From NCBI GenBank assembly GCA_946965045.2, contig OX337230.1:2480001-2544000 (forward strand): DNA of 64,000 nucleotides, written 5' to 3'. The position numbers and the translations under genes are program-made. Below the pieces are notes generated by a model that was not told where the DNA came from, did no database searches, and saw only the letters and a list, made by a program, of their open reading frames with translations. Every line of letters starts with the position of its first letter. Positions within the stretch are counted from its first letter, which is position 1. Positions 26,092-47,687 of this stretch are shown here, piece by piece. This stretch comes from Epithemia pelagica. Its lineage: Eukaryota; Protista; Bacillariophyta.

Positions 26092-28221
26092 TCAGAACTG
26101 CGAGGAATCCTGTAAGTGTGGAGGGTGTTGCCCGACGGGATTGTTGGGCTCAGCAGGTTGCAACGGGAGGGCAAAGAACGGGGATTGCCCCGACAGTAAG
26201 GCCAGAGACACGGTCATAGTTTGAAATTCCAAAGGAAAAGTGCATGGTACGTCATCGGTCATCGTTGAAGGCTCGACGGAGGACCATCCTCCGTCCAGAG
26301 ATTCATCGTAAGATACCACCTCTGAAGCCTCGGTGTCCATGTCCATCATGCTAGTTGGTTCGTGGACGTCCATATCAGCTGGTCCGTCTTCTGTCCCCGG
26401 GACGACAACGGTCTTAGGGATAGAAACCACTTTGGACTGTCTTGGTCTCACATACTTCACCTTGGGTCCTGATACTTGGGAAGGTCTCGCGGAACAGTGG
26501 CTCTCGATAAGTGGCTGTTGCTCGATTGGAACACGGACGGCGGAGAATGTGACATCCTCGGGAACCACGAAGGCAATCTTTATCGTGGAAATCTTCTTCT
26601 GTACTTCTCCAGAGATGTTGTAAACAAACCCGTGCAGGAAAGATCGGATGTCAAAGGCATGTTCGTCGCCCACAGTAAACTGAAGGCACAGTAGAGTCCC
26701 ATCTTCAAGAAGAATGGCTGCGTCAATATTCGCAAAGTTCGGAACGCTTGGTTTCCAATATAACCAAGTGGTGTTGAGCGCCGCAATGCCATTCATCCCA
26801 GTTCCAGTTGCTTGAGTATAAGCTGGCCAAGATGCATTGAATCCAGTGCCGACGATACTTCCAGATGTCACGGTAGCGTCCACACCTACAGTTCCAGTGG
26901 CCATAGTAGCAGCCGATATGCCACCAACCCCTGCTGCAGCTTCGACAGAAGCTACCGGAAACTTCCTTGCGGCGGCACTTTGGGCCTGCTGGCGCCACTG
27001 GTCAATGGCTGTTTCCGACAGCTTGTGACACCAGAGTTCGAAATGCCAACCAAAGAGGCTTTGGTTCATGGTGCTCTTTGCGAACATCATTCCTCGCTGC
27101 ACTTCATCTATGCTGAGCTTGAACCACAGCTTGCGAGCAATATGGGCCGAACCCAAAACTAAAGTAGTTTCGAAAAACGTTCTGCCGCCATTTTCTTCAG
27201 GATCTTCAGTCACCATCATGGCGCGAAGTCGATCCAAGCTCTTCTTGTCGGCACTCAACTGAGAGCTGTAGTACGCCATATTGACGACAGCATCATTTGC
27301 TTGCCTGGTGACTATACCATCTATCCACTTTTGCTTTTGCATAAGGATTGCCTCTTCTACTTTTCCGTCTTTGGAGCAGCACTGGATGGCATGACGGATA
27401 CAACCGCCAGTCGTGTCGAAAATTTTTTCGGTTGTACCTCGATTGCACTTTTTGAGAATCTTGAGGGCTAAGGAGAGCTCGTCAAGACTCCACACTTTCA
27501 TCGGAAAATGCCATTCATCCATGTTTTCTTGTTTTGTCGGCGGGCACCCTCCGCTTGTGACTAGATCGGATCCTGCCACTTTATCACTGGTGTTATCGTA
27601 CCTTGGACCGTCCACGATACATTTGATACCAAAGTCCGTTGGACTATTGGACTTATTTATATCGCCGGTGAAGAAGCGATAAGCGATTGCTGTGCAGAGA
27701 GAAGGAACTGTGTAGTTGGCATAAATGTGACGACACGCCACAATATGGACTGTTTCGTCATCGGTCTTGGCCATCCAAAAAAGGGAGGTCGCGGCTTCCT
27801 TTTGATCACGAATTTTCCTTACATAGAGCACGGCCTTGTGACGCCCAGTCAAAGCTAACGCGATTGCGGCCAAAAAAGAAAAGATCGACTTGCCGATGCC
27901 GGGTGATCCAAAGACAACGGTGGGATGGGCGTCATGGTTGAGTCGGAGATCCAGTGCGTGCTGAAGGTACTTGCGAACGAAAATAGTTTTTGGCAAGAAT
28001 CTCTCTTCCTCGACTCCCTTACGCAGGTCATCTAGACAGGACAAATCAAGGGCATCATCGGAGACCTTGAACTCAATTTTGTTGGTTGTCGATCTTTGAA
28101 ACAAATCCTGTAATTTTACGGAGCAAGCTTTGTTCATGACGAACTGCACTCCTAGCATTGCATGTTGGATGACATCTCCCTTTTGGATTGGTATGACGGT
28201 TTCGGTTCGTTCGGCGCTCAT
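26092..28221 (-). CDS. Crinkler/RHS-like effector: P-loop NTPase plus PD-(D/E)xK restriction-endonuclease domain
   Basis: Walker A GSPGIGKS, Walker B-like CIVDG, VTSG, MKVWSLDEL, TGGCIRH, GWHFE, YWKPSVPNFANIDAA and LQFTVGDEH, in the order known for CR-NTPase+CR-REase proteins; intact 709-aa ORF. Confidence 0.8.
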   Translation of the reverse strand: MSAERTETVIPIQKGDVIQHAMLGVQFVMNKACSVKLQDLFQRSTTNKIEFKVSDDALDLSCLDDLRKGVEEERFLPKTIFVRKYLQHALDLRLNHDAHPTVVFGSPGIGKSIFSFLAAIALALTGRHKAVLYVRKIRDQKEAATSLFWMAKTDDETVHIVACRHIYANYTVPSLCTAIAYRFFTGDINKSNSPTDFGIKCIVDGPRYDNTSDKVAGSDLVTSGGCPPTKQENMDEWHFPMKVWSLDELSLALKILKKCNRGTTEKIFDTTGGCIRHAIQCCSKDGKVEEAILMQKQKWIDGIVTRQANDAVVNMAYYSSQLSADKKSLDRLRAMMVTEDPEENGGRTFFETTLVLGSAHIARKLWFKLSIDEVQRGMMFAKSTMNQSLFGWHFELWCHKLSETAIDQWRQQAQSAAARKFPVASVEAAAGVGGISAATMATGTVGVDATVTSGSIVGTGFNASWPAYTQATGTGMNGIAALNTTWLYWKPSVPNFANIDAAILLEDGTLLCLQFTVGDEHAFDIRSFLHGFVYNISGEVQKKISTIKIAFVVPEDVTFSAVRVPIEQQPLIESHCSARPSQVSGPKVKYVRPRQSKVVSIPKTVVVPGTEDGPADMDVHEPTSMMDMDTEASEVVSYDESLDGGWSSVEPSTMTDDVPCTFPLEFQTMTVSLALLSGQSPFFALPLQPAEPNNPVGQHPPHLQDSSQF

Positions 28222-28466
28222 CGTCCTGTTGCTTTATTGGGTGTAAGAGGAGGCTCTCCGTAGTGTACGTCATCTTGTATAAGTGGCAAAGAGGAGACCG
28301 CCGGGGTGTGCGTAGAGGGATATGGATGCAGAAAATAAATGTCAGTAGACCAGTCACGAACACAGATAGGGGAGAAACAGACAGTGTCGTCAGTAGATTG
28401 GCGATGACTTCCCGTTGGAAATGTGAGATGAAGGAGGACGTCAGGCGGAATGTAAAGAGGAGTGCG

Positions 28467-28498
28467 CTAGGAAATAGGACATCCCATTTCTGTGGGAT
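28467..28498 (-). terminator. Candidate Helitron 3' end (hairpin plus CTAG)
   Basis: Minus strand reads ATCCCA-CAGAAA-TGGGAT (6-bp stem, 28481-28498), 10 nt, then CTAG (28467-28470), 63 bp past the RepHel stop. The next base is C rather than the canonical T. Confidence 0.35.
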
Positions 28499-28532
28499 AT
28501 TTGGTCCGAAGTCTTATTCAATAATATTTGTA

Positions 28533-31500
28533 TTAGTGGAAGAGAGACTGTATTATGGCTTCATTTTCACCCTGGAGTAAGATGTTGTAGTTGTCATTGG
28601 AAATTGGTTGAACCTCTTTTGTTTTCATGAAATTGATCAGGTTCTTGTAGACTTGTGGTACATTATTCAAAATTCTCAGGAGTCTCTTTTCCAAAGGTTT
28701 TCTCAGATAAAGTCCTGTTATTGTGCGTACTCTTGAGAGAACGACATAGGACCAATTTTCAACCATTGACCAGGTATGTACAAACAGTGATGCAACTGAC
28801 GCACCCTGAAGTTTATGACCCGTTGTTGCATTGTTGCAGACGAAGGGGAGCTGAAGTCCTTTCATGTGAAGTTTCAGCCGTGATTCCTTTTTTAATGAAG
28901 ACATTATTTGGAACCCAGGCAAGATGAGGACACTTTCTTTGTCGCAGGACTTGAAAACGACGTATTTCATCATCCTCGCCGATTGTTTCTCGAGCGGGGT
29001 GCGTAAAGTGTTCAGTGTCCTCAAACTCCAGAAAGTTGTCGTCTTTTCCTTTGTGTCTCTGAATTATTTCATATTGTTCATAGAAGTCCTTTGGGCATAA
29101 GTCGTATAACGACTGTGGTCGACAAAGGTAATGAAGTGCCAGAATATCTGCATATGGTTTTCCTTTGTGCGATCGCAACTGTGTTCTTGTGATAGTTTGG
29201 TTTGTAATAAGTTTCACAAGGTCTGTGACAGGCACATAGGCAAAGTCATGAGAGAATATGAATCTTGAATGATTCCTCGTAAGAAAAGATGCCTGTGACG
29301 CTCCAATGATATTGGTTTTATTGGCAGCAAAACCAGCCCTGATTAGGAGGCTTAGTGATTGGGATCTGCTTGTGCGATCGTCCTCCACCTTTGATTGAGC
29401 AGCTGTTAAACTTTGAATCACCATTTCATATGGTTCAGCATTTTGATCCTGTGTATTTTTTGTTGGATATTTGATGGTGTACATACCAATTGGACCAGGA
29501 GACACAATCCGAGCATTTGAGTTACCGCCGATCATTGATTCAGAAACTGCATTGACATATGTGTTGACAAATACGTCGTATTCTGAACGCTTTGGAATAA
29601 CATGAAAAAACCTTCTTCCCTCCATTGTACCATGCCATTTGTAGAACTTTGATCTGTTAAGACAGCCTTGAAGCATATTCTGTGTCGTTGTATGTTTTTG
29701 CGGTAGTTGTGGATAACGCATGCGACACTATAATCCATTAAAATGATTGTCGGATTTTGCGCCAGGCTTTTTCCACGGCTGATTCTTGAAACATGATTTT
29801 GCATGTCTGGAATTGTGTAGATCGGTAGATGCATGTTGAAGAGAGGGAAATACGTTCACCTGGCTGCGATCCGGTTTAGTGTATTCATAGCATATGTTGG
29901 AAAGCAAATGTGTTGTATCCGGTAATCCACGTGGCAAAGAAATTGAAGTGACACCTTCCAAATAATTTTCAACCAACTCCTCACTCGTCCATTCTTTGTC
30001 ACAGTGCTCACAATATGCAATTGTTAATGATTTCTTATGACAGTCTTTGTGCCGCAAGTTTCTCAATTGTTGTATATCAACCAATCTTGGTCGCTGTCGC
30101 CTTCCAATTCGTTGCGGACAACCATCATGATCAAAAATTTGGTGTATTGTTCTTTTTTGTCGGTATAATGTTTCGCGAGAAAGATCCACAAGAGACGTTG
30201 AAACTGCATTATCCAGAACATGAGCAATATGGACTCTGGCTTGCAGTTGAGTTTTTGTGTTATCGTCATCAAGCAAATCAAGATAGGTGTCAAAACCACG
30301 TAGTCAAATAATGAGATGTACATGCAATGTCGATCGGCCCTGTTCTTCAATGGCACCTCCAAATGCAAGTGGAAGCCCAAATAAACCAGGTTTGCCTGTT
30401 GGTCTGTTGTGTTTTATGTCCCATCCAACTACTTCTTCAAGAACAATATCAAGAACATATTGGAATGCAAGAGATGTTATGCCAGGAAATTTTAACCGAA
30501 TCTGTTTCCGTAGACGGCCTCTGTTTTCAAGTTCATCAGTGGATAATTGCTGAACATTGATAGCGACACCGTTTTTGTCATGCATGGAATAGGTTGTCAC
30601 AAGAAAGGAATTTTCATCATCTGGCGTCACAGTGAGAAATATACCTCCAAGGCCAAAATGATGCTGTAATGAATTCATCCAACCTCTGGCTCTTTTAGCA
30701 GCCTGATCAGTGTGTGGTAATGCTTTTGCTATGCTGTCGACGCTCTGGAATAAATTTTGAGCAGCTTGGTTCTGAAGAGTTTGATTGCCATTGTTATAAG
30801 CTTGTGCAGCAGCAGCGAAGTTTAGTCTATTCAGAGCACGAGGCAAATCGTGGAGATATCGGTTACCATTCAATATTTGGCAGGAATTTTTGAGGACAGT
30901 ACTCCGGATTTTCATATTAAATAGTTTAAGAACAAACATAGGTGTATGGAAGTCGGGGTTGCTAATATACGATAGATGTTTTGCATATTGAGGTAGAGCA
31001 AGATTCATACATTCGCCATTTGAGGTTGGTCGCTCTTCATCTGGACCACCTTTTCCAATGGCATCTGTAGCATACAGCTTAAAACAAAGTTGTTGTCGAT
31101 ATAATCATTTGTGAACTTGCGTGTAAGGTTGGAGACGACAGATGCATCAAATCCCTGTTCCTGAGCCTGTAGCACAATTTTCTCAAAGTCAAATGCCGAA
31201 GTTTGACCACCGTATACGGGCGTAAGAGAACCGTCCGGAAAATAAACAGCATACGATTCTTGTGATTCAATGTCTCTCAAGTACCTCCTTTGATCTTCTG
31301 TTTGATTCGCACTGTTTGGATCTTGCGGTGCAGTGGTCGACAGATCAATTAATTTCGGTTCAAATTCGACCAGTGCATTGTGTAAATCAACCAAATCAAT
31401 GTCTTTCCATTCTGTATTATTGTCAATTAACCATTCAAGAGCAGCTCTAACTCTATATGGATTGATCGTACTTCTATGACGAACAATTCTTGCCTGTTCT

Positions 31501-31921
31501 TGAGTAAATTCACCATGCATAATATATACTATATTGGTATTAAGAATATCGGCTAGTTTTGTCCCAATAACGACACTTCGACTAACAGATAGTGGGGCGA
31601 CCTTATAATAACCCAGTGTTCCCTTTAATTTGGTACTGCGTCCACCAGTATACGTAAAACAGTAACCGAATGCGACCAACTCCTGTATATTCATAGTCTT
31701 TATATAGACAATCCGGTATACTTGTGTTCTTTGGTACAAAAAAAATCACGATGCTTCTTTAATGTGCAAGGACGTGTCTTCTTATAATTTGTTCCAGTGA
31801 ATTGATCACAGACAAAGCACACCCAGGGGGATATGGTTCCGTTGTCAGAGCAGTGATATAGAGCCGACATTCTTTCATTAATTCGATTCTTTACATCAGC
31901 GGTAGATGCTACAGATGTCAT
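28533..31921 (-). pseudogene. Decayed Helitron Rep/helicase (HUH Rep plus Pif1 C-terminal remnant)
   Basis: Ordered motifs CFVCD, RVRAALEWLIDNN, FLTVTPDD, EEQGRSTLHVH, HNSRHAKSCFK, YTIKYPTK, then ATTGHKLQG and YVVLSRVRT. Broken by frameshifts (~31740, ~31058), in-frame stops (30304-30306, 29728-29730) and deletions. Confidence 0.9.
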
Positions 31922-32239
31922 GTTGAATAGGGTTTAAGTTGAGATGGATAAAGACTTAAGATAGATGGATAGATTTGACTTTGAGTAAAGATATTGAGAT
32001 AGATTTGACTTTGATGGACTGGACGAACAAATGGACTTCCTGTTTGATGTTTGAACATGGAAAAAGTGGGAGGTAAGAGGTGAGGCATTCATAGTATGAA
32101 ACGATATATGATGAGGACGAGCAGCATCATACTTACCAAACAGTTCCAAGCGATCGGTTTGATTTTTGCTTGAATCCAAATTATGAAAGGAGCGCAACTC
32201 TCTTCTGTCTAAAAGAAGTCATATCGTTGCAGTTTTAGC

Positions 32240-33900
32240 TAATGAAGATCTCCATGTCATGAAGCGACATCGACATGATAAAAATAGTGACGTACTACAT
32301 TTGACAACACATCGCAGAACATAGACCATCATGTCTGAAATCTATTTCATTGGAAGGCGGAATCTCATTCCATGTCATGTCAACGTCATTGGTGAAAGGT
32401 GACATGTGATAAGAGAGTTCAAACCTAGAAGGCCTCACCAATGACGTTGCATACATAGGTAGACCTCTTACTAACTTGACAATACAAAGCTCTGTTCTAT
32501 GCGTGCGACAGTCAACAAACCATCATGTCTGCCATCTATTTTTTTCAAAGGCCATATCTCATTCCGTGACATGCCAACGTCATTGGTAAAGGGTGACGTG
32601 TGGAGACATAGCTAGATCGCTTAGTATTTGCCCAAACATAGTTTTATGTTCTATGCGTGTGACAGATCACCTACGCAAGAACCATAATCGTGTCTGACAT
32701 CTATTTCATTGGAAGGCGTGATTTCATTCCATGAACTTGTGGAGAGAGTCCCAAACTAGTAGGCCGCACTAATGACGTTGCATAGCTACCGAGACCTTTG
32801 CGCTGGGAATTAAAGTCCATTTGGTCACGGGTGTATCTAACACACAGCCCCAGGCTCTATGTTCTATGCGAGCGACAGCCCACCTATGCACGAACCATGA
32901 TCTCTGACATCTATTTCATTGGAGGCGAGATTTCATGCCATGACATGCCAACGTCATTGGTGAAGGGTGACGTGCAAACTGTTTAAACAGATCCATAGTC
33001 CTAAGTTCCATGCGTGCGACAGACCACGTATGCACGAACCATCATGTCGGACATCTATTTCATTCAAAGGCCATATCTCATTCCGTGACATGGCAACGTC
33101 ATTGGTGAAGGGTAACGTGTGGAGAGAGTTGCATACATAGCTAGATCGCTTAGTATTTGCCAAAAAATAGTTTTATGTTCTATGCGTGTGACAGATCACC
33201 TACGCACGAACCATAATCGTGTCTGACATCTATTTCATTGGAAGGCGTGATGTCATTCCATGAACGTGTGGAGAGAGTCCCAAACTAGAAGGCCGCACTA
33301 ATGACGTTGCATAGCTACCGAGACCGCTTACTACTCCTAATTTGACAATACATCCGCCTCGGTGTGTGTTTTGTTGTCCGTATCACACATGCGCTGGGAA
33401 TTATAGTCCATTTGGGCACGGGCGTATGTAACATCATAGCCCCAGGCTCTATGTTCTATGCGAGCGACAGCCCACCTATGCACGAACCATCATCTCTGAC
33501 ATCTATTTCACTGGAGGCGAGATTTCATGCCATGACATGCCAACGTCATTGGTGAAGGGTGACGTGCGAACTGTTTAAACAGATCCATAGTCCTAAGTTC
33601 CATGCGTGCGACAGACCACGTATGCACGAACCATCATGTCGGACATCTATTTCACTCGAAGGCGAGATCTCATTCCGTGACATGGCAACGTCATTGGTGA
33701 AGGGTGACGTGTAGAGAGAGTCCCAACCTGGAAGGCCGCACTAATGACGATACATAGCTACCTTGTCCTCTTACTAATGTATTGTGCGACACACCACTAT
33801 GCATGAATCATTATGTCTGAAATCTATTTCATTGGAAGACGAGATTTCATTCCATGACATGCCAACATCAGTGGCAAAGCGTGACGTGGGAACTGTTCAT
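32240..33900 (+). repeat. Tandem array of 9 ~115-bp-core monomers with a duplicated 3-monomer higher-order unit
   Basis: Core TTCTATGCGTGCGACAGACCACCTATGCACGAACCATCATGTCTGACATCTATTTCATTGGAAGGCGAGATCTCATTCCGTGACATGCCAACGTCATTGGTGAAGGGTGACGTG. The ATCTATTT part of the core lies near 32340, 32530, 32700, 32910, 33050, 33230, 33500, 33640 and 33820; 32608-33136 is duplicated as 33137-33720. Confidence 0.92.
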
Positions 33901-34255
33901 TCGATAATCAATGGTAATGACAACAAGGCCATACTTGTCAGTCGGATGTTACAAATTTCATGTCATGAAATGACAAGTGATGGCTTAACATAACGTATCA
34001 TCATTCCATGATATGATACCCTGCTTCAGGCTATCAGCATCATTTCTAAGTACGTTGTTTTGAGGCTACACAGGACTCAATCACTGTAGTAGACGATGAG
34101 TTAGGCCTGTTGGAAGTGGTTACAGGAGGGAGCGTGAGGTTATGATGGTCGGTTGAGCGATGGTGGGCTGTGCAGACAAATCTCATGTCATGGAAGACTC
34201 CACCGGCCGTGTATAATATTTCATATGCAGAGTTCAGGAACATGCACACGTGACA

Positions 34256-34894
34256 ATGGACACATCAAAACCGAAGAACATTGGCTTATTAAATTTTTTT
34301 GATTTTGTTAGCAGGACTGCTACAACCTCAATTGAAGATGGTCCAGCAGGCGTTTCCTTCTGTCATATTTGTGAAGAGTACATTCTGTCCGCCAACGACG
34401 AAGAGCATTACCAGTCGCAATGTCACCAACGCAGCTGGAATGAATTTTGTAGTCGAATCGAAAACATTTTGGAAATCCGAGATGATGCGGTGAATACCAC
34501 AAGAACAATACCACAAGTCCATTGGCAAAACAGGATTTACGAGAGTATTGGAAGAGCTGTGGCCACAGATGACAAAACACTGATGGAACGTGCGAAGCAG
34601 CTTCGCTCCTGGTACAAGCATTTGGAATGCATTTCCTTGTTGGAACTCGCGTTATGGAAGTTCTGCTGTGTACCCCTACAGCAGCAGCAAAAACAATCAA
34701 GGAAGCATGACAACCATGAACACAACATCGGCCTCAAATCCTTGTTGGAGTGGAAATTGTGGGAAAAGAGTGGTTGGAAGGTCTACAAAAAGCTACACTT
34801 TCGTTGTAATGAAGTCGTCATTCACATGAATGCCATTCTTCCGTTTCTTCCGTACCAAGAACAACATCAGGGAGACACCTATGAGCTACCTTAA
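34256..34894 (+). CDS. Small protein with a U1/matrin-like C2H2 finger and a diatom-type LLELALWK...ILPFL C-terminal domain
   Basis: CHIC-x12-H-x5-H; SLLELALWK and AILPFL resemble a C-terminal module of diatom ankyrin-type families (recalled, not searched). Confidence 0.6.
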   Translation: MDTSKPKNIGLLNFFDFVSRTATTSIEDGPAGVSFCHICEEYILSANDEEHYQSQCHQRSWNEFCSRIENILEIRDDAVNTTRTIPQVHWQNRIYESIGRAVATDDKTLMERAKQLRSWYKHLECISLLELALWKFCCVPLQQQQKQSRKHDNHEHNIGLKSLLEWKLWEKSGWKVYKKLHFRCNEVVIHMNAILPFLPYQEQHQGDTYELP

Positions 34895-35473
34895 GTGTGA
34901 AATCAAACACTTTCGGTACTTCTGGGATTATAGACTACCGCTTTTATGATTTAGAATCCTCCTATGTTTTCATGCCGGTACGTAGATGATGTGAGCAACC
35001 CAGATGTCAGATTCCGGTAGGGCCTCAAATAGAATACTATCGGTTATTTCATCTTCAAACAAAATGATTCTCCTTGGATAACTACCTAGACTGCCGCGGA
35101 GTGTACTGGATTGTCTCTAAGAAAAAAATACAAAAAGTTGCCGAGTGTAGTCAACCTGCAGGCAATGGGTAGTCTGACATAGGAGTAGCTAGTAACTATG
35201 TGCTGTTGAAATGTAGGGAATCGCTTTAAGTCATGCACCCTAAACATGACACTACCACAGGTAGTTCTGCTCTATTTCAACATGAGATCGAATCGACCCA
35301 TCCTTCGACTCAAGTCCGCTTAAAGCAAACCTCTCAGGACCAGTATCGATGTGCAAACCTCACACATTGGTTGGATTATCATCTAAGCTATAACCACTAG
35401 GCCAAGATGTACCTAAATGATCATGGAATTACTGCATTCTATTCCATAGAACGAGAGATCTCCCAACACCTAT
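34797..35473 (+). repeat. Segmental duplication copy A (~677 bp)
   Basis: Near-identical (estimated >95%) direct copy at 38082-38757; weaker homology continues to ~35900 versus ~39190. Confidence 0.93.
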
Positions 35474-36971
35474 GGAATACGGAAATATACCAGGGGCTCA
35501 AATATGGTTGCATTCTATTCCATACAAGAGATCCCCGAACGCCTATAGTAATATAATACTGGAATACGCAAATATACCACAAATATATGTTCATCGATAC
35601 AGGATATAATGAAGATTCTGTATTGAGGCTCAAGTTAGAATGTATATTGTTGTATGGGAATTCCAAATATGGTATGGTAGGAAATGACACTGGACATGCA
35701 GGAAATATTCCATCTTATGAGATGAAAACGTCATGACTTTGATGGTGTCGTTAAGGTTGCACTTTGATCTCTAGCCTATCTCCCACTCTAGTAACCAGAA
35801 TAGTTAGAACTCCACCAATCATCAAGCGTCTGACAACGTCAAACTGTGGGTGGCGAGTGGCGAGGCGTCATACGTCTATAACAATCGCTGACGTACTAAG
35901 TATTACCCATCAGTGTCGGCGATATCTCATGGCATGACATGGAAACGTCATGGATGAAGGGTGACGTCAGAACTGTTTGCACTGCCCGACCTGGCATACA
36001 TAGGTACGCAACACAAGGACTGCGATATCTGATGTGATGACATGGTGCGATGCGAACTGTCTGCACAGCCGGCCGCCGATGAAACGTGTAACATATGCTG
36101 ATGGCATGCATCTAATTAGGTACTAAGGTACCTATCAATCATCATTACCGTCTGCATCGCTCTTCCTTGGAGAGGGTTTCATCGCCTTTCCTGATTTCAG
36201 TTCCTTTTTGGCTTTCTCGCCTTGTCTAACCACGCTCTTTAAACTCTTCGTCCGCCTCGTCTTCTCTGCCAATTCCGCCTCAGAGTAGCGTCAGCATAAA
36301 ATAATGATTCATGCCATGAAATGACATCACCATGCTTGGTGAGTTTACTTGGAATGGGGCAACTATGATCATAGGAGTAAGGTAGAAGTAGCTACGGCTG
36401 GTAGTAAAGTCTATTCTTCCAGCTGCCGCGCGTACCCGCTAGGGTACGGGCGACCGACCGCGCTGGCGCCATGACACTGGAATCATGGAGCGGGGGGACA
36501 GCCGCGTGTGACAAGGCGCCACATAGACGAACCGCTTTTTGGGCCCCATAACCACCTAATCACAGCTACGCCTGGTAGTAATCTTTAGTTACTAGAAGGT
36601 CACGGTCGCTGTTTGGTCAACCAAAGGTTAGTCGCACATATAGAGTGAGAATGGAGGGGGCGGGGTCGTGTTAATTTGACAAAGGTGGAGTCAAGTACTG
36701 GTTCTCATCCCGTGAAATGACATCACAGCCCGCCATCGATGAAATTTCGATGGATGGTTTGGTGAAATGTTGGGGGCAAATTGGGGGTGGGACAGGCTCT
36801 TATACCAGCTTCATGGGTCGCACTCCTACAAACAACGTTGAACCTAACACAGCATTCTATTGAAAGTTGAATTGGATCATGGAGTCTTCTTATACATTCG
36901 GCCGTAAGTTCCTGACATCGCTACGCTGTTGGCATGCATCGGTTTGTGTGCGCAATCCCTCCAACGTTCAC

Positions 36972-38054
36972 ATGGAGCATGTTGTTGTATTCGGAGGAGA
37001 TGTTGATCGCTCGAGATCGAGGGACTCCCGAACACAGCCAGATTACGAAGCAAAGGACGAAGTGTTCCATCTCGCCACTGTGGATGACCATCAGCTGTGG
37101 ACTCCCGGTCCAAGAATGAACTATGCACGATCGGAACATGCTGGTGTTCTTTGCAATGGTAGTGTTTACGCCATAGGCGGGGAAGACACTCACACCATCG
37201 AGAGGATTCAAGTTGCGGACCTCCTCAATACTACAATCAACAAAACTTGGACAACGTTGGCATGTAAGGTGTCAAAAGGCCGAGGCCTTACTGCTACAAC
37301 TGTGAAGAATCGATATATTGTTGTAAGTATTGGTTATGGAGAAATTGATATTGTCGACACAGAGGCCGAGGCTGTAACTAAGTGTCCAAAGAAGATGAAT
37401 AATGGCTGGACGACCTGTGGACTAGCATCAATTGGAAGCCGGATTTATGCTGTCGGGCCGTGAGTATAATCCTATGGAATCTTTTGAGTTCGAAGAGCAT
37501 CCAACTCTTTCACGAAAGGCGATGAAACCCTCTCCAGAGGAAAGGAAGTCAGAAGACAATTCTACGGATGAAGATGCCTCTGAGGCAGAATCGGTAGAGA
37601 CAACTACGGAGGATGAAGATGTCTCTGAGGCAGAATCGGTAGAGACGACTATGGAGGATGAAGATGTCTCTAAGGCGGAATCGGTAGAGGAAACGAGGAC
37701 GCAGATGAAGAGATTTCAGACACACTATGATATCTTTTTTGACGATGTCGAGTTTACAAATGCCATACGAGTTGGCACATGTCTACTTGCGGTAAATGAC
37801 CTGGGTGTATGGTCGGTTAATCCAATGAAAGAACAACAATGGAAGCATCTACAAGAATCACCATCGCTTTTTGGCCAAGCATCTTACAGCTGTCACGAGG
37901 AGTGGCTGTGATTGGAAGTGACCTAGGCGGCAAGAAAGAGTTTCAGATCCATGTTCTTCCCATCACAGACAAGAACTCTGCAGTGTTTTCTATGCTGAAA
38001 AAGTCAAAGTCAGACGAATCCGGATCCAGCACCACTAGTATTATTCTAGAGTAA
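36972..38054 (+). pseudogene. Kelch-repeat protein pseudogene
   Basis: VVVFGG, WTPGPRMNYARSEHAGVLCNGSVYAIGG and IGSRIYAVG; coding continues across frameshifts at ~37455 and ~37870. Confidence 0.75.
37564..37695 (+). repeat. 45-bp coding minisatellite, 3 copies (EDEDVSEAESVETTT)
   Basis: GAGGATGAAGATGTCTCTGAGGCAGAATCGGTAGAG is repeated; the first unit is 42 bp. Confidence 0.9.
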
Positions 38055-38081
38055 TGTCCAAGTAAGAGTTCATCAGTCGTT

Positions 38082-38757
38082 ACTTTCGTTGTAATGAAGT
38101 CGTCATTCTCATGAATGCCATTCTTCAGTTTCTTCCGTACCAAGAACAACATCAGGGAGACAGCTATGAGCTACCTTAAGTGTGAAATCGAACACTTTCG
38201 GTACTTCTGGGGTTATAGACTACTGCTTTTATGATTTAGAATCCTCCTATGTTTTCATCCCGGTACGTAGATGATGTGAGCAACCCAGATGTCAGATTCC
38301 GGTAGGGCCTCAAATAGAATACTATCGGTTATTTCATCTTCAAACAAAATGATTCTCCTTGGATAACTACCTAGACTGCCGCGGAGTGTACTGGATTGTC
38401 TCTAAGAAAAAAATACAAAAAGTTGCCGAGTGTAGTCAACCTGCAGGCAATGGGTAGTCTGACATAGGAGTAGCTAGTAACTATGTGCTGTTGAAATGTA
38501 GGGAATCGCTTTAAGTCATGCACCCTAAACATGACACTACCACAGGTAGTTCTGCTCTATTTCAACATGAGATCGAATCGACCCATCCTTCGACTCAAGT
38601 CCGCTTAAAGCAAACCTCTCAGGACCAGTATCGATGTGCAAACCTCACACATTGGTTGGATTATAATCTAGGTATAACCACTAGGCCAAGATGTACCTAA
38701 ATGATCATGGAATTACTGCATTCTATTCCATAGAACGAGAGATCTTCCAGCACCTAT
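38082..38757 (+). repeat. Segmental duplication copy B
   Basis: Direct copy of 34797-35473 at an offset of about 3285 bp. Confidence 0.93.
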
Positions 38758-39716
38758 ACCAATATAATATGAACTCAAGTTGGTATGTATATTGTCGTAT
38801 ACAAATTCAAAATATGGTATGGTATGATATGAAAAGGACGTCATCGAAATATTCATCTTATGATATAATAAATGATAATCATCTCAGAAGGCTGACGTAC
38901 TTCTTAGATTCTTGTTAGTGCTAAAAGACCACCTACGCACTTGCTGAGCCCCATCACATCGCTCCGACACCTATTCATCGCATTGCGATATCTCATTCGA
39001 TGACATGGAATCGTTGACAAGCCCGCCATCGATGAAGCCCCTGACATATGCTGATGATGGGCATCTAGTTAGTTACTAAGGTTGCACCTGGATATCTAGC
39101 CTATATCACAGTCAAGTAATCAGAATAGCTAAAACTCCACCAATCATCAAGCGTCGAGATATGTCATACGTCTATAACAATCGCTGACGTACTTCATCGC
39201 ATTGCGGTATCTCATTCCATGACATGGAAACGTTGCCAAACCCGCCATCGATGAAGCCCCTAAAATATGATGATGATGTGCATCTAGTTAGGTTCGTTAC
39301 CTCTCAATTTCACGATGTGTCATGATTTGGTGGTACGTTTATAACAGCAGCTAAGGCACTCACTCCTAGTATTTAGTACTCCTAGCATCACCATAAAGCA
39401 GTCGCGAAAACTTACAAATCTTAGTGTGATTCGTTCTGTCACGATTCGAACGTCACGGTACATGGTGTTATTATCCATGATGTCTGGACGTCGACCCACT
39501 TCAGCACCATTGCCTGTCGTTTTTATCATCGTCACTGCTCAAAAGGGATCTACCGCCGACATCATCAATTATTGATATTAAGTAGAGTACTGGAACGATT
39601 CTACTTTAAACTTTGCAAGTTACAACGCAACCCAAATCTGTATAACAGTACTTGTACAGGTAGAAGAATTACAGATTCCGGCAGGTGATTGACGCTGATC
39701 TATTACATCTATTACA

Positions 39717-40580
39717 ATGGCCTTCGACATGGCTTGTATAAGCGTGGAAGAATTTCACCAACGCTGGGAGAGAGCCGCTCACAATATCACTGGGTTTCAC
39801 TCAACACAAGAAATTGAGTGCCAACCGGATGTAACTCGAGCCAACAACCGTCTACATGGATCCAAAAATAAGCAGAGAAACGCACAGTACGGTCGTCTCT
39901 TACCAGGGGCTACCGACGAAATGCTGTCCGAATGTCTTCAAGTACGAGAAACCGACATTTTCGTTGACATCGGCCATGGTTTGGGGAACGCAGTAATGCA
40001 GGCGGCCTATACCCACGGTTGTACAAGTCGAGGTATCGAGCTTGTGACAGAGCGGTACGATCTTTCTCTCAAGTTTCAACGGGAATTGGAAGAATTTGCT
40101 GGACGAGTACCGGTGGAGCTTAGAAACGGTCAACTACAAGAGGTCAAACATCGGAATTTTCTAACGGAGTCGGGAAAACATGTCATGAAGGTATTCTGTA
40201 ACAATGATGGCAACGTGTTTGGAGCACGTTCGGCGTTACAAGCTCCATATCTAAATGATTTTGTCGCAGGGCTTTTCGCTTCCATGAAGGAAGGGTCGAA
40301 GATTGTTACGTTTGATCCATTAACTTTTCAGGTTGGTCCACTGGATGACGTCAACAAAGAACGGAACAAGTTCAAAATGAAAACCTCTGAACATTCATCG
40401 TTCTATACAATGGAACGGAAAGTTCTTGGACCACAAAATCAGTGCGTATCATGGTCGGAAGGTGGAGTTAATGACTCTCAGATGACAATGTTTGTGTACA
40501 CGAGAGTTGGACAGGACTCTACTTTTATTTACAGTGTGCCAATGTGTCGCAAGAACTTAAACAACACTACCCAAATATAG
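39717..40580 (+). CDS. DOT1-like (H3K79-type) SAM-dependent methyltransferase, possibly C-terminally truncated
   Basis: QYGRL, FVDIGHGLGN (SAM motif I), RGIEL, KVFCNN, KIVT, VSW and YTRV match DOT1 core order; a Cys-containing frame continues after the TAG to 40652. Confidence 0.8.
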   Translation: MAFDMACISVEEFHQRWERAAHNITGFHSTQEIECQPDVTRANNRLHGSKNKQRNAQYGRLLPGATDEMLSECLQVRETDIFVDIGHGLGNAVMQAAYTHGCTSRGIELVTERYDLSLKFQRELEEFAGRVPVELRNGQLQEVKHRNFLTESGKHVMKVFCNNDGNVFGARSALQAPYLNDFVAGLFASMKEGSKIVTFDPLTFQVGPLDDVNKERNKFKMKTSEHSSFYTMERKVLGPQNQCVSWSEGGVNDSQMTMFVYTRVGQDSTFIYSVPMCRKNLNNTTQI

Positions 40581-41499
40581 TATGTTGTCAACGACAATAA
40601 CGAGATGCTTGTAAAGGGATGCCCTTGTAAGCGGACGATGCGGTCACGCTGACTGGTACCCAAGAATATGGCCAGTAAAGACGGGTCGAATTCAAGCAAC
40701 GTCGAAGACAAAACGTCTTGCCAAAGATCAGTCAAGAAAGCTCGTTATGAATACAAACTAACTCTCTAATATGGTCGACTGTCATTTGCACCTGAATAGA
40801 CTGACTATTGTAACAATCCTTCTTGCCTTCTACCCACTTAGTTTCCGCATAGTCTCGATTCTGACTACACTTTTCGTCCTTGATGTTTCATGTCATGAAA
40901 TGACATCGATCATGTCTCGGAGATATCTCAAGTCATGACATGGAAACGTCATCGATGAAGGGTGGCTAGCCTGAGTTAGGTTAACAACCAAGTTTCCACA
41001 GTAACACTAGCTAAAAATAATGTTTTCGCGCGTAATCGGCTTCCCACCAACGGGTAGTAGCCCTAACATAGGTAGTAACTATGTGCTGTTGAAATGATTA
41101 CGCATCGCTCTAAGTTATGCACCCTAAAGTTGACACTCCCAAACACTACTAGCTTGCAAATAAGAGTCCTATCCCGCGTGACTCGTAACCTTATACCTAA
41201 TCAAGCAACTACGGCCTCGGGACTCGTGGTCGTGAGCGCGCTAATCTAGCTATGAGCTGTTTTTCGTCCTATAAAATATAGGAGTACTCCCAGTTCTTCG
41301 ATAGTTTGTACTGTGCAAAGTCCATGTTCTAGCTCCCAGTTCTCTGGTGTTGTAGACGCGCCTTCAGTCAGAAGATAGTTTGTACGTCACCTATATGGGG
41401 CAACTCATAGATTAGTGTTTACGAGGTTAATTGTTGATGCTGTGCGTAGGTGTGGACGCTTCGTAACTGTTTACCTGTTCCTCGTCAATCGCGTCTATT

Positions 41500-41995
41500 G
41501 TTCTATGTTCTATCCGTGCGACAGACCACCTATGCACGAACCATCATCATGTCTGACATGTATTTCATTGCAAGATGCCATCTCATTCCGTGACATGCCA
41601 ACGTCATTGATGAAGGGTGACGTGCGGAGGGAGTCGAAACTTTTTCATTGAAGAAGAGATTTCATTCCATGACATGACAACGTGATTAGTCAGGGATGAC
41701 GTGTTTGGAGAGTCCAAACCATGATGTATCAGTGCGACAGACCACCTATGCACCAACCATCATCATGTCTGACATGTATTTCACTGCAAGATGCCATCTC
41801 ATTCCGTGACATGCCAACGTCATTGATGAAGGGTGACGTGCGGAGAGAGTCGAAACTTTTTCATTGAAGGGGAGATTTGAGAATACATAGCTTGATGTTC
41901 TATGCGTGCGACAGACATGTCTGACATCTATTTCATTCGAACGCGGGATCTCATTTCGTGACACGCCACAGTGATTGGTGAAGGGTGACGTGTGG
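41500..41995 (+). repeat. Second array of the same monomer (4 copies)
   Basis: Same core as the 32.2-33.9 kb array; 41516-41652 is duplicated at 41732-41869 with few differences. Confidence 0.9.
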
Positions 41996-43187
41996 AGGCC
42001 GCTTCTTGACGTCAGAATCGGATGACGAATCAGCGGTAAATCTATAACAGAGAAACACGATTCCACATCAGATAGCTTGAATAACCAGATGCATCTTGAA
42101 TCTTGAACCCCATGTGCAAGGTAGCAAGGACGACTCTGTTCAAAAGCATACTACAGGCAATAGCAATAACTTGAGATCATCAGAGTTGGAATTTTATCGT
42201 CTATAAACTTTGCTATCTACAAAAGATGGGTTTTAGTAGGTTCTCACATATGCATGCGTCCATGTTCACACGTCTTTGAGATCTTGGAAGTCGAAATAAC
42301 ACTATTATTTCTTCCCAGTCAACTTTCCACTAAATCAATGTCGACTTGGCATGATAGCTATATAGAACATTAGCTAGCACTGCTAGTCCTCTATCTTTGT
42401 CTAGGTTAACGTCCACCTACTTCAACAACCATAGGCAGTATAGGTAGCACTCGTGAGTCCGGTTTTGCAATGCCGGAGGATATATCTCAGAAGGCTGACG
42501 TACTACTCCTCAGAATTTAGTTCAGTGAGATTCTCATGCCATGAAATGGCATCGACATCAGCATCATAAAATAATGATGTTGAATACAAAGCTACCCATT
42601 CGACAGGTCGTGACAAGCGTTCTCTCCAACATGTTGAGAGCTTCAACACGTCTGCGACTTGTCCGCCATAATTCTACTATAAATAGCTGTACTATGATGT
42701 GTCAAGATTATGTAGTAGACCTGCATAATCATTGATGTCCCATGTCAAAAGATCTCATCAAGGATCTCGCATGTCATGACATGGCACAGTACTTTGACAA
42801 CACGTACCCCCGTCTTCTATGGATGCGACGACCACCGTATGTCTGGCATCGATTTCATTAGAAGGCGGTATCTCATAACATAACATGGTAAAATCATCAG
42901 TGAAGGATGACGTGCATAATGCAATCAAGCCCAGGTGCAAACTGGGTAGCACTGGCAGGAAACGAAACTGCCGTATGAGGTGATGAGTCTGGTTGGGCCG
43001 GAGGTGCCACAGGTGCAACTACTGGATCTTTGCTCTAGCTAGTAGCTAGGCTCCCTAGACTGGCTCCGCTGCACTTATTACGGAGGAGAGACTACCTGTG
43101 CTACCATGACAAAAACAATGACTGATATTATGGATCACATGCTTTTACGAGTAATATTATTACGTTATATCCGAATACCACCCAACA

Positions 43188-44660
43188 TTACCAACACAAA
43201 ATGGCCAAGCAAAATTTATTTATGCCTGCACCACCTCGTCCATTTTCGGGATTCTTTTCATAATTGGTAAAGACTTTGCGGACTTCCAACAGTGAACTTT
43301 CACCTCGGGAGAAAACATCCTTATGAAAGCCCACTGCATGTTGCACCAGTGTCAATTTGTATTGTAGAGCGCAATGAGTGATCCATGTTCTGTTCTTTCC
43401 GAACGCAAGCTTCATCACATTGAGTTCTCGTTGAATAGCAGCCGATAAAATTGGAGGGATAATACTCCAAAACTTAAAGTTGATGACACGTAGGACCTGT
43501 ACCGCAACAAATTTCAATGTCGTCATTTCCAACACCCGACGACAGTTCTGAAAAGCCTTCAGATTCTTCTGGATTCTCCCACCAACAACAGGTTGCCCAT
43601 ATCTCATTTTGCAGGTTTGACTAGTCCAAGGAGAAATATAAAAGCCATACCAATCCAGCTGATTCTGCACAAGCTTCACACCAGGGCTTTTTTGTGGGAA
43701 AGTAATCGGTACATTCAAAAACTTACTCATGTTTCCATTGAATTCTGTTCTGCCTGATGATCCTGCGCTTCTAGCGCAGTTGAAGCCTCCATGTGACAAC
43801 ATACCATCTTCAGACATGTGGTTGTAGAGACGGGTTGTTTCACTGTGTTTCATCAGACGCTTTCGGTTATGAATACGAAGAAGAACAAGAATGCAAACAT
43901 TACAATTCTCTGGCTGGTAAGCAACCACAGAGACGTCAGATTCCGGTAGGGCCTCAAATAGAATACTCTCGGTTACTTCATCGTCAAACAACCTGTTGCT
44001 TCCCTTTCGTTTTTCATCGAACAGTTTTCTTTTCTGCTTAATAATGTACAGATCAACCGTATATTTTTGTATTGCCCGACCAACTTGCACCTTTTTCACA
44101 AAACATTCGGTGGATAGCTTCGTATAGAGGTACCTACACTCTTACCATTTCTTGGGGTACAATCCTTTTTCCTGCGCCTTCAAACAGCACTCAATATCGG
44201 GCACTGCATGCCACAAGCCTTCATATCTGCCATTGTCTTGTCCCAATGAATGAATATCCGTCTCATTCGACTTCGGAGGGCCAATAAAAAGCATAATCTC
44301 CGGCAAGAATAGCAACCCATCAATACTAGCCGTTGTAGATATAGGCAGGTTTCGTCCATCCTTCTTCTTCTCATGTACATTCAACTTATATTCACAACAA
44401 TGGCCAATGAAACTGGCAGGCTGTAGTCCATTCTTCACGAAGGGTAGAACTTCATTATACCATTTGTCGTGTTCACATCGCTCGGCTTTCATTCGCTTGG
44501 TTATCTTCTTTAAACAATAACCACATACCACCCTCCCACAATTTGTACACATTAGAGTGTTGCTTCCTCCACGCAACGGATCATCTGAGCATTCCAAATT
44601 TTCTCTTCTCCATCTGTGTTTACGTTTTTCCTCGACTGTATGACGTGAGCAAAACAAACA
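43188..44660 (-). pseudogene. Cys-rich (PHD/ADD-like) finger plus uncharacterised HxD-containing domain, ~490 codons with one in-frame stop
   Basis: Track ORFs 44142-44657 and 43188-44099 share a frame and are separated only by TAA (44142-44144). Motifs CLFC, CTNCGRVVCGYC and GHCC; C-terminal AVGFHKDVF. No in-frame ATG seen. Confidence 0.65.
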
Positions 44661-44804
44661 TTCCTCCGTTTTTCATGTTTTATGACGAAACGATCCCGGT
44701 TAATGAAATGCGATCTCCCATGTCAAGAAATGAAAACTTCAAAATGTGGGTGGCGAGGCGCCAGGATTCATCAATCCTGTCACTCTTCATGGCAAGCTGC
44801 GCTG

Positions 44805-45260
44805 CCAGTACTCACCTCACCCTTCATCGATAACGTTCGACGTCAGAATTGGATGAGGAATCAGCCCTAAATCAACGTCAGCGAACAATGAGACCACATC
44901 AGATAACCTGAATAAGCAGATGCATCTTGGATCGTCGCCAGCTAGCTGTAACATGCATAGGGTAGCTAAACTCATCACTAGTACGATGCTTGTCATCTCC
45001 CATGTCATAAAATGACATCTGCATCATAAACTAGGTGGCACAGTCATTAGACACATATATACGTGACACAAACCACCTACGTTCGCACGATATGCTACTT
45101 AACCCTAAGTGCGTCTGAGGGGGGACTTGGGTCATACCTAGATGCGTGTCATCAGCATATTATGTTAAGGGTTTCATTGCTGGCAAACTGTGCAAACAGT
45201 TCTCATGTCACCCTTCATCGTTGACGTTTCCATGTCATGACATGAGATATCGCAATCCCA
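44805..45260 (-). repeat. Inverted copies of the array monomer
   Basis: 45188-45255 reverse-complements to GCGATATCTCATGTCATGACATGGAAACGTCAACGATGAAGGGTGACATGAGAACTGTTTGCAC, matching the + copy at ~35920-35980; partial inverted copy at ~44810-44835. Confidence 0.8.
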
Positions 45261-47687
45261 TGAAATTCATCTCAGACACTATGGTTTTCAGTCGCTGCGA
45301 AGTATAATACTAAGTGCGCCCGCCGCTCTTCTTGACACTTCGTATCTATTTACTTTCACGATTAACGAACCCGGATATGTATGCTTAACTTTCTCAGTAT
45401 TTCTTCTTCTAGCAGTCAGCCAACGTTTCTATGTTTTGTGACTATGGCACGCCGAGCTATCATCTATCTACTAGAATCTATAGTTACTCCCCATCACTGT
45501 TGTTCATTATTTTTGCCGCTTTTGCTTCTTTCATAAATTCCCTATCGGCTAGCGTCATATCTTTGGTCCACCAACCAGGATGGTGGCAAAATCTACGTCT
45601 AACTACCACTAGAGTGTAAAAAATACCGGGTAATCCCTCAATTCCAGGAAATCAGTGGAAACCCGGAAAACTCCGACACCATTTTTGAAAAATTCATCTC
45701 TTTTTTATATAGTGGTACAGCTTACCCCCAAAACAGTCGGTGACACCCATACTACCTTCACCCCGCCACGTTTTTTCCCTATATTCCCCTTCTATTTATT
45801 TAAGGGCAAACGGCGCCGTTATTTAATTTTTTTCCATCAACCTTACACTGCGGAATTGTATACTAATCTCTCCAATGTCGTTACGCTGGCAATGTGGTAA
45901 GCGTTCTTCCCCCTGCCGCAAATTCCCGGGGGGTCTGGTTACACCACAGTAAAACGCTTGTTTGGGGGCAATCAAAATTTGGACTTTCTATGGTTTCACC
46001 CCGACCTAATACTACTACGAGAAACATATTGTATTATTTGGAATCATCATAATCAACAACAACAACGAAAAAACAGTGCTGCCGCACGTACCTGCTAATC
46101 ATCAAAGCGAAAAGGCTACCACCTCTAAATCGTACGTACGTCGTCCGCAAATTTTTCTTGGCTTGTGTGTTTTCTTGGGGGGTCCATTAGTACTACCCCC
46201 CAGCGGGGGTGAGAATTTTGCAGTCTGTCCGTCAATCATTTTCGTGATTCTCCTTCTCACCCCCAAGGCGCGACGTAGCGATTTCCCGAGGTTGATACAA
46301 AAGCCATCGAACCGCTCAACACATTCAACACGGAGCCAAACTTGTGAGATCTGGTGCACCCCTTCTTGGCGTTGTAAAACCCTCCGAGTTGTTTCATTTA
46401 CCTATCCTTATATTCAACAAGGTGCTACCGTGTTGTATTTGCCTCCGAACGGTCCTGTCGTATCTCCGCTTCACCGTGTTATAAGCAACACGTCCACCGC
46501 AACAGACCAAAGGCAAATTGTGACCGACATCACCCATCATCAACCTCTTTTGTCCCCTGGAACCTCTCCCAAATCCCTTTCCGATGGAACCGATGCCCCG
46601 GGCAACAGCACATCCCTTCGCTCCCTTCAAGAGGCAGTATAGCGAGAAGCTCTGAGTGTGCTCTGGGTGTGTCATTTTTGCCTCGGCCCGTCCCTGTCAT
46701 GTTGTTGCACCGACACATTCGAGCCGAGCACAAGTGCCATGACAATGAAAGGCATGGTTTACTCCTTCGTGACATTTGTGTGGGTCTGTGGGTCCAAGGC
46801 TCCCTACCTATTGTTGGCTCTCATTGCTCTGCTTGTTTCGTTGCCTACCTAGATAATGACAAGGATGAAAGTATAGAAACTGTTTGCCATTTTTTATTCT
46901 TTCTGCGCATACTGTTGGAGTTTAGTGTAGCAACTAGCAACCGGAGCATTATTGGGGATGGATGAAGCATTGCCTTGTTGGGAGAAATGCATTGCCAGGC
47001 TTGTGGCGATGCTTCCATTATCATCTTGATTGCGCGTTGTGGAAGGTGGCGCCGAGGCACTACGGTAACCGGATGCTCCCTGACAGCCGTTTGACATAAT
47101 CGATGTCGTCGGTGGGAAGACGACGACATTATAGACTTGATATCCAACCACTGCACCTCCACCACCGCGATGAATGTATGTGTGGTGTTGGAGTTTTGTA
47201 TCAACCTCGGGGACTTTCCGTCGCGCCTTGGGGGTGAGAATACAGATTCTTTTTTTGTGCGACCAGATTCTCGCCCCTGCTTGGGGGTACCATTAGTACT
47301 CTCTTTATCGTTCTTCTATTTTATATTGATGTTTTTGTTTCATACGGATCTGAATATGGGACTCTGGAGAGTATTACCACCCCCAAATGTACATACACTC
47401 CTGGAGTCTGTTGAGTTGAAAAGTTCAATATAAGTTCATTACATTTACAGTCTGAGAACTCTGGAGAGTGAGGAGCGACAAGTCTTGCCATGTGTGACTG
47501 AAATCGCCCCCAAAGCCCCCATCCGTGAACCTCAATGAACATCACGCCCATCATCGCATCGCCAATAGTCAACATAGACATTGTGGACATATCCTCATGT
47601 TCTTCTAGATCATCGCCCTGGCAACAACACAAACGAGACGAAGCAACGACCTTTTCGGTACCCAAACCGAGCAGCAGCAACAGCAGC

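Follow-up and report, generated by a model that had tools for sequence, protein, structure and literature searches.

What kind of genetic unit combines the relic of a Helitron protein with a row of unrelated genes, and why do the spacers between these genes share one short repeat? This question is raised by a conspicuous 18-kb island in the diatom Epithemia pelagica, which lies in a 64,000-nucleotide (nt) stretch of contig OX337230.1 (assembly GCA_946965045.2, positions 2,480,001 to 2,544,000 of the forward strand), referred to as the window. The genome searched comprises 60.5 Mb in 23 contigs (C1 etc.), and the window corresponds to C3:2480001-2544000; coordinates without a contig name are window positions. 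An original prediction had described a pseudogene of RepHel (an HUH Rep plus a PIF1-type helicase) followed by chromatin-related cargo genes in strict alternation with a hairpin repeat, had interpreted the repeat as an iterated Helitron or Helentron end signal, and had likened the island to an integron-style cassette array. The island belongs to a new family of Helitron-like elements, itself of a known kind, whose termini are mapped exactly and which comprises four large copies and numerous short ones. The copy in the window is probably a degenerate, non-autonomous element of the HLE2 type (Helitron2/Helentron) that contains passenger genes and an internal satellite.

Extent and copies of the element

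At both ends of the island the similarity to three other large copies, designated C3b, C7, and C10 (Table 1), breaks off abruptly, and the flanking regions are unrelated. Both termini are common to the four large copies and about 10 sequenced short copies, again with unrelated flanks. The first 23 nt of terminal region A occur at only five sites in the genome, and a related variant, ATTGGGGGTGGAGG, opens short copies of about 470 bp. The last 165 nt of terminal region B are 98-99% identical to other copies, and the 14-mer at its 3' end has 19 exact sites genome-wide compared with one for the reversed control. About 15 short copies of roughly 470-500 bp (for example C1:3115018-3115515) carry the same or a variant terminus pair. 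The C3b, C7, and C10 copies are 95-99% identical to one another across many kb, and the island has patches at 75-96% identity in common with them. No target duplication was seen in the flanks of about 14 copies compared, no long terminal inverted repeats occur in the family, and the element contains no internal copies of either terminus. Given sharp ends in common with the other copies and the absence of both target duplications and long terminal inverted repeats, the island thus is a single copy of a mobile family. The original prediction correctly treated it as one unit but set the limits (28467-45260) too narrowly, as the element extends slightly further on both sides.

Most inspected copies read A-TTGGG...GAGAA-A, where the hyphens set off the outermost A residues; this equals T^T on the other strand if the outer A residues are host bases. 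Exceptions are one copy, L012, with a T at the left position, and the C7 copy, whose right end is a variant. Because of the sense of RepHel and the T^T rule taken together, the canonical orientation of the window element probably is the minus strand, with RepHel adjoining the 3' end. No empty site was found by way of paralogous flanks, and the left flank is unique in the genome. On this side, a 709-amino-acid (aa) open reading frame (ORF; 26092-28221, minus) has its start codon 14 nt from the element end. The right flank enters another repeat 168 nt past the element end. This repeat family of about 310 bp, with 31 matches genome-wide at up to 96% identity, is located at 46193-46500, and one of its copies (C8:2779428-2779844) adjoins a truncated terminal fragment of the Helitron family. 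A different RepHel family that is intact in this genome (L024, L027) has termini unrelated to the mapped ends. In public metagenome contigs, scans outside of which this genome and its close relatives may lie, neither the 3' terminus nor the core of the internal repeat had any match.

RepHel remnants and probable placement in HLE2

As predicted, the island starts with a RepHel pseudogene. It consists of an N-terminal region, DUF6570, and the HUH Rep domain at about 29065-31915, with Pfam matches on the minus strand to Helitron_like_N (30304-31008) and DUF6570 (PF20209; 31005-31739, E 1e-5; E 2.5e-14 in the sister Rep). The relic aligns with residues 423-1051 of a 1901-aa RepHel that is intact in this genome, and its protein sequence is 64% identical to that of an 899-aa Rep ORF on C7. 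The relic retains the HUH motif, but tblastn alignments revealed two in-frame stops and two or more frameshifts, and about 740 codons that make up the helicase core are deleted. About 137 nt past the Rep relic, only the last 75 or so helicase residues follow, with the C-terminal tail at 28692-28928. Since Rep is interrupted by stops and frameshifts and the helicase core is missing, the window copy cannot move itself. The region around the tail (28452-28893) shares 92-95% DNA identity with the end of a PIF1-type helicase ORF in the sister copies, which is intact in C7 (862 aa) and C10 (901 aa) and interrupted in C3b. None of these three copies contains a Rep domain. Of RepHel, the monomer-bearing sister copies retain the helicase only. 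The interruption in C3b is a 354-bp patch (C3:2909255-2909608), 96% identical to a part of the Cys-finger gene at window 43797-44147. It has short microhomology at its junctions and represents sequence exchange between copies 390 kb apart on the same contig.

A sister locus (C7:1579509-1597083) connects the two halves. It contains Rep (64-74% aa identity to the window relic), an insertion of about 6.5 kb, the rest of Rep, and then a helicase with 67% aa identity to the C7-type enzyme that is open over 576 aa; a second helicase fragment lies about 2 kb further on. Because this locus has both parts, one RepHel gene was the common source of the Rep sequence in the window and of the sister-copy helicase, and the family therefore is a Helitron lineage. 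All four large copies, as well as a relic at C3:4014643-4019835, contain RepHel-derived sequence, and an intact RepHel of this lineage was not found in the assembly. Pfam searches of all large ORFs in the four copies revealed no other transposase, recombinase, or integrase domain. Between sister copies, the ratio of nonsynonymous to synonymous substitution rates (dN/dS) of the helicase and MBD-like ORFs is 0.65-1.1, which is near neutral and no sign of maintenance. DUF6570 upstream of Rep is a reported marker of HLE2 (PMC11417382), and its presence places the family in this group. The predicted composite element of rolling-circle type, with a RepHel relic and passenger genes, thus is supported by the sharp shared ends and the common RepHel ancestry.

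The internal repeat

A hidden Markov model (HMM) built from 14 monomers (nhmmer, E<=0.01) has 23 matches in the window. All of them fall within 32324-45286, at the positions named in the original prediction, and none in the remaining 46 kb. In a separate repeat search, 14 copies of a 69-nt core were recovered at 32.3-42.9 kb, together with inverted copies near 45.2 kb; a 36-nt core has seven matches in the window compared with none in 100 shuffles. Genome-wide, the monomer core has 29 matches (none for the reversed control), all of which are in the four large copies: the island, C3:2.90-2.91 Mb, C7:2.597-2.605 Mb, and C10:2.155-2.175 Mb; the HMM matches, too, all fall inside the elements. Each of these copies carries RepHel-derived sequence, so the repeat is not scattered through the genome without a link to RepHel, an outcome that would have spoken against the predicted association. 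Within the copies, 12-15 monomers each occupy the spacers in both orientations. The monomer of about 100 nt most likely is an internal satellite specific to this family that has spread through the non-coding spacers and become amplified locally. Internal tandem repeats are known in non-autonomous elements of the Helentron type (PMC4067079, PMC7492417). Elsewhere, a solitary 70-nt monomer fragment that is 100% identical to window 32328-32397 lies in unrelated surroundings at C4:3914860-3914929; its appearance suggests a recent templated insertion (filler DNA) for which this element was the source. The 677-bp duplication in the window is part of a non-coding module of about 1 kb that is common to the sister copies and terminates in a monomer. 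Searches of this conserved module against Rfam (E<=0.1) and for tRNAs found no non-coding RNA and no tRNA.

The monomer had been described as a hairpin. Among 37 aligned monomers (35 of them distinct) that represent all four copies, the proposed ACGTCA/TGACGT stem shows no compensatory change among the distinct copies, 16% of the cells are unpaired, and pairing is no better than in column shuffles. When folded as single-stranded DNA, five of six monomers behave like shuffled sequence (z about 0). A hairpin thus finds no support.

Passenger genes

The ORFs of the island are located where the original prediction had placed them, and Pfam supports the Helitron Rep, DUF6570, Kelch, and DOT1 assignments. 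The DOT1-like ORF keeps the S-adenosylmethionine-binding motif D-x-G-x-G-x-G and matches yeast Dot1 in the PDB (E 5e-9). Its five full-length paralogues, in forms of 404 aa and 975 aa, are 65-69% identical to it, and the dN/dS against them is about 0.21. One 404-aa paralogue resides in a segment of at least 7.1 kb that is duplicated 32 kb apart at 99.7% identity (C2:2.2015-2.2086 and 2.2339-2.2410 Mb). An MBD-like gene is represented in the window by a remnant of 125 nt, situated 560 nt downstream of the DOT1-like ORF; in C3b and C10 this gene is intact, with 341 aa. Its Pfam MBD match (E 3.6e-4) is just under the cut-off, and 21 of 23 PDB matches are MBD proteins. Intact paralogues of the Cys-finger ORF, 31-35% identical, occur on C8, C16, and C5; a closer homologue (47-52%), which has stops, lies 4.3 kb upstream of the C7 sister RepHel on the same strand.

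The other two ORFs resemble large host families. The Kelch-repeat fragment is truncated (199 aa compared with typically 370-500 aa), with a best match of 52% identity in searches of the own genome. The Kelch family itself has at least 800 candidate loci, 150 of which were scored, and its genes of about 370-500 aa form dense clusters on a number of contigs (e.g., C9:3.1-3.58 Mb, C13:3.06-3.30 Mb, and C17:2.95-3.16 Mb). The zinc-finger (ZnF) ORF is a diverged member of a host family that has about 30 genes, grouped in a cluster at C5:143-311 kb, with 30 matches in the own-genome search and a best paralogue at 49% identity. Neither it nor the Cys-finger ORF matches a Pfam family even at E<=5. By position, the cargo paralogues elsewhere in the genome sit away from any monomer, and an HMM scan of five DOT1-paralogue loci and one Cys-finger paralogue locus found no monomer. 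Judging by these sequence comparisons, the DOT1-like, MBD-like, and Cys-finger genes are old passengers of this Helitron lineage, whereas Kelch and ZnF are diverged or truncated copies from host families. The predicted chromatin-related character of the cargo accordingly holds for the DOT1-like and MBD-like genes, which recur in the lineage, but not for the Kelch and ZnF ORFs. The possibility that the Cys-finger ORF is the transposase of a DNA transposon bounded by inverted monomers was discarded, as its family is found intact away from such repeats.

Interpretation and alternative explanations

For an HLE2-type element, the RepHel protein would nick the element ends, the element would be copied as single-stranded DNA, and insertion would follow without target duplication. 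Such a rolling-circle mechanism may apply to the whole family, and the window copy, immobile on its own, would have to be mobilised in trans. The monomers may have served as repeated homology where copies were duplicated, inverted, and reshuffled, which would be the main demonstrable effect of the repeat. The alignments among the three near-identical copies (95-99%) have 90 breakpoints, of which 23 are situated no more than 50 nt from a monomer compared with 7.9 expected, although these events are not independent and repeats by themselves tend to end BLAST alignments. This clustering fits ectopic recombination or template switching at the repeats, and either process would account for duplicated and inverted segments, among them an inverted duplication of 699 bp in C3b.

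Several further observations weigh against an HLE2 origin. No intact autonomous RepHel with these termini was found, so that ends and enzyme are linked by association only. RepHel is on the minus strand in the window copy but on the plus strand in the sister copies, where the helicase is inverted relative to the termini. The T^T rule works only if the outermost A at both ends is counted as host DNA. The terminal 65-70 nt form no hairpin beyond shuffles (both ends, both strands, two subfamilies; z -1.1 to +1.1). Finally, the short terminal inverted match, which comprises either 13 nt with one indel (end positions 3-15 to 20-32) or 8 nt (5-12 to 24-31), is weak (P 0.02-0.4 per copy). It ties one terminus to a site 20-32 nt inside the other and is conserved in two subfamilies. 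The missing enzyme, the missing hairpin with its weak inverted repeats, and the changing RepHel orientation would also agree with a sharp-ended family that is not a Helitron but moved by some other, unrecognised mechanism, with the RepHel pieces being nested or captured debris. However, RepHel-derived sequence of shared ancestry recurs in every large copy and in the C3 relic, and Pfam offers no other transposase or recombinase. Moreover, the lack of target duplications and long inverted repeats and the sharing of termini with short deletion derivatives fit Helitron-like elements (PMC11417382, PMC5148889). A non-Helitron origin therefore appears very unlikely.

The repeat itself invites other readings. 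According to the original prediction, it is an iterated Helitron or Helentron end (termination or initiation) signal, and the island arose by successive captures or consists of monomer-bounded cassettes. Indeed, monomers are found in every spacer between the window ORFs, the segments shared by the window and C7-type copies mostly are monomer-bearing modules while the intervening genes differ, and the sister-copy breakpoints are enriched near monomers. However, the true termini, known from about 20 copies, bear no resemblance to the monomer: its HMM has no nhmmer match in the terminal 200 nt of the copies and short elements at E<=100 with filters off. A monomer derived by copying a terminus was ruled out for the same lack of similarity, and no terminus is repeated inside the element. 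The apparently strict alternation of repeats and ORFs is expected by chance, as 6-9 random repeat clusters would occupy all five non-coding gaps with P = 0.10-0.38, and the monomers at 35.9 kb and 39.0/39.2 kb belong to two copies of one duplicated module (677 bp, 98%). The number of monomers per spacer varies from one to nine, as in a satellite, and shared homology between copies ends about 130 nt past the monomer. Relatives also have the same genes next to each other without the repeat. In the relic C3:4014643-4019835, a block consisting of the helicase N-terminus, the MBD-like gene, and the DOT1-like gene follows the C3b and window copies colinearly, yet the relic yields no monomer match at E<=1 (its helicase ORF is truncated, and its DOT1-like gene has one in-frame stop), and the C7 sister RepHel locus pairs RepHel with the Cys-finger gene in the absence of any monomer. 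Since the monomer is unlike the termini, has no supported stem, and is absent from relatives with the same genes, it is neither an end signal nor needed for the gene arrangement. The reading as end signal or cassette boundary is largely refuted here and extremely improbable. A DNA transposon with inverted monomers as terminal inverted repeats (e.g., 35919-35982/45190-45253) was likewise rejected, because the true ends lie outside. As the repeat is neither a hairpin nor an end signal, the island is an ordinary gene-carrying transposon and not a set of integron-like cassettes.

Alternatively, the monomers could be cis-regulatory modules, such as promoter or enhancer pieces, of the element genes. 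Each monomer contains two inverted TGACGT hexamers 11 bp apart as well as CATG palindromes, and TGACGT is a bZIP-type half-site. All four cargo ORFs in the window have a co-oriented monomer 350-950 nt upstream, the only cargo gene on the minus strand is the one with inverted monomers upstream, and across the 37 copies conservation is highest in the core with the right-hand TGACGTG. However, these numbers are small, the nearest upstream monomer in the other three copies often has the opposite orientation or is kilobases away, and arrays of up to nine copies with higher-order structure resemble a satellite. A regulatory role would be compatible with an HLE2-type element and would add a function to the repeat, but we regard it as unlikely. 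Going further, the lineage might maintain a chromatin toolkit of its own (DOT1-like enzyme, MBD reader, and Cys-finger protein) that affects host marking or silencing, with the TGACGT monomers as shared regulatory and recombination modules. Members of this set recur in the window copy, the C3b and C10 copies, the relic at C3:4.016 Mb, and the C7 sister locus. Gene segments would then be swapped between copies, for example by template switching in rolling-circle copying. This suggestion, which draws on the recurrence of these genes, is quite improbable.

Comparison with known elements

The HLE2-type interpretation agrees in many respects with described HLE2 elements such as FoHeli of Fusarium oxysporum and the families annotated by HELIANO (PMC5148889, PMC11417382). 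Common features are a RepHel with DUF6570, HUH Rep, and PIF1 helicase, the lack of target duplication, flanks compatible with T^T, short non-autonomous derivatives with shared termini, and terminal inverted matches that are short, weak, and asymmetric, their inner member lying 20-32 nt from the end. In HLE2, terminal inverted repeats are 12-16 nt long with the inner one subterminal, asymmetric terminal repeats have been described (PMC5148889), and copies with the ORF in opposite orientation are reported there, too (PMC5148889, PMC11417382). The E. pelagica family differs in that no terminal stem-loop was detected, the inverted matches of 8-13 nt are non-significant alone, and no autonomous copy was found.

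A family-specific internal repeat that expands and contracts locally is also carried by Helentron-derived DINE-1 elements of Drosophila (PMC4067079) and by oyster elements (PMC7492417). However, these are short elements with one central array, whereas here the repeat is distributed over many spacers, in both orientations, in a gene-carrying element of 16-27 kb. Host-derived genes or gene fragments are found in other Helitrons as well, as in the capture of gene fragments in maize and in a Phytophthora proto-Helentron that carries SET and TIR domains (PMC11417382). The latter is a stramenopile example with a chromatin-type enzyme. In contrast to these cases, the passengers here are DOT1-like, MBD-like, and Cys-finger genes that recur in several relics beside truncated copies from expanded families. 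The likeness to bacterial integron cassette arrays is superficial and limited to genes being separated by one repeat. Unlike integrons, the island has no structured recombination site, no site-specific recombinase, and a variable number of repeats per spacer, and its relatives have the same genes adjacent without the repeat.

Other features of the copies

The features of the window element and its large relatives are compiled in Table 1. The sister copies contain additional sequences of their own. The terminal region of C3b is split by a 1.17-kb insertion (C3:2919056-2920228) that has terminal inverted repeats, shows an apparent duplication of TA, and probably is a Tc1/mariner-type miniature inverted-repeat transposable element. 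Private to the C10 copy is a 5.3-kb insert (C10:2163553-2168881) between 758-bp direct repeats that are 99.3% identical. Its layout resembles that of a long terminal repeat element, its ORFs of 198-565 aa have no Pfam match, and no reverse transcriptase or integrase is recognisable. The copy-specific inserts of C10 and C3b contain no Pfam domains, and hence no other transposase was seen in them. The sister copies open with a 643-aa ORF of diverged 162-bp (54-aa) tandem repeats without a Pfam match (C7:2592833-2594764), a 135-bp piece of which sits inverted at window 36151-36285.

Table 1. Coordinates of the window element, its components in positional order, and the four large copies of the family.
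Feature	Position	Strand	Description
Whole mobile element	28236-46024	.	17,789 bp; one copy of the Helitron-like family; strand not assigned
Terminal region A	28236-28407	+	Starts ATTGGGTGTAAGAGGAGG
RepHel pseudogene	28533-31915	-	Pfam; tblastn against intact RepHel genes of this genome
Monomer array A	32324-33902	+	9 HMM matches; higher-order repeat of ~530-590 bp at 96-97%
ZnF ORF	34250-34894	+	214 aa; one CxxC...H...H motif
677-bp duplication, first copy	34797-35473	+	Second copy 38082-38757, 98% identity
Single monomer	35891-35989	+	HMM, E 9e-20
Kelch-repeat fragment	36867-37463	+	Pfam Kelch; open frame 199 aa
Two partial monomers	38966-39037 and 39189-39256	+	Inside second copy of duplicated module
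DOT1-like methyltransferase ORF	39717-40580	+	Intact, 287 aa; Pfam DOT1, E 8e-16
Inverted monomer match	40865-40908	-	HMM
Single monomer	40888-40986	+	HMM
MBD-like gene remnant (5' part)	41141-41280	-	blastn, 84-91% identity
Monomer array B	41541-42003	+	4 copies
Three further monomer matches	42527-42932	+	HMM; last at 42838-42932
Cys-finger ORF	43188-44657	-	Two pieces, 44657-44142 and 44099-43188; 490-519-aa family
Inverted monomers	44801-44837 (partial), 45185-45286 (full)	-	HMM
Terminal region B	45305-46024	+	Finishes ACTACTACGAGAAA
Window copy	28236-46024		17.8 kb
C3b copy	C3:2896934-2920267		23.3 kb
C7 copy	C7:2592510-2609040		16.5 kb
C10 copy	C10:2152789-2179915	-	27.1 kb

Implications

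These results settle the identity of the conspicuous 18-kb island and remove the analogy with a eukaryotic integron, which is unsupported. The definition of the family is useful for repeat annotation and helps to avoid taking its DOT1-like, MBD-like, Kelch, and zinc-finger ORFs for ordinary host genes. The recurring DOT1, MBD, and Cys-finger passengers provide a stramenopile example of transposons with chromatin-type genes, and the rearrangements clustered at the internal repeat show how such elements turn into mosaics.

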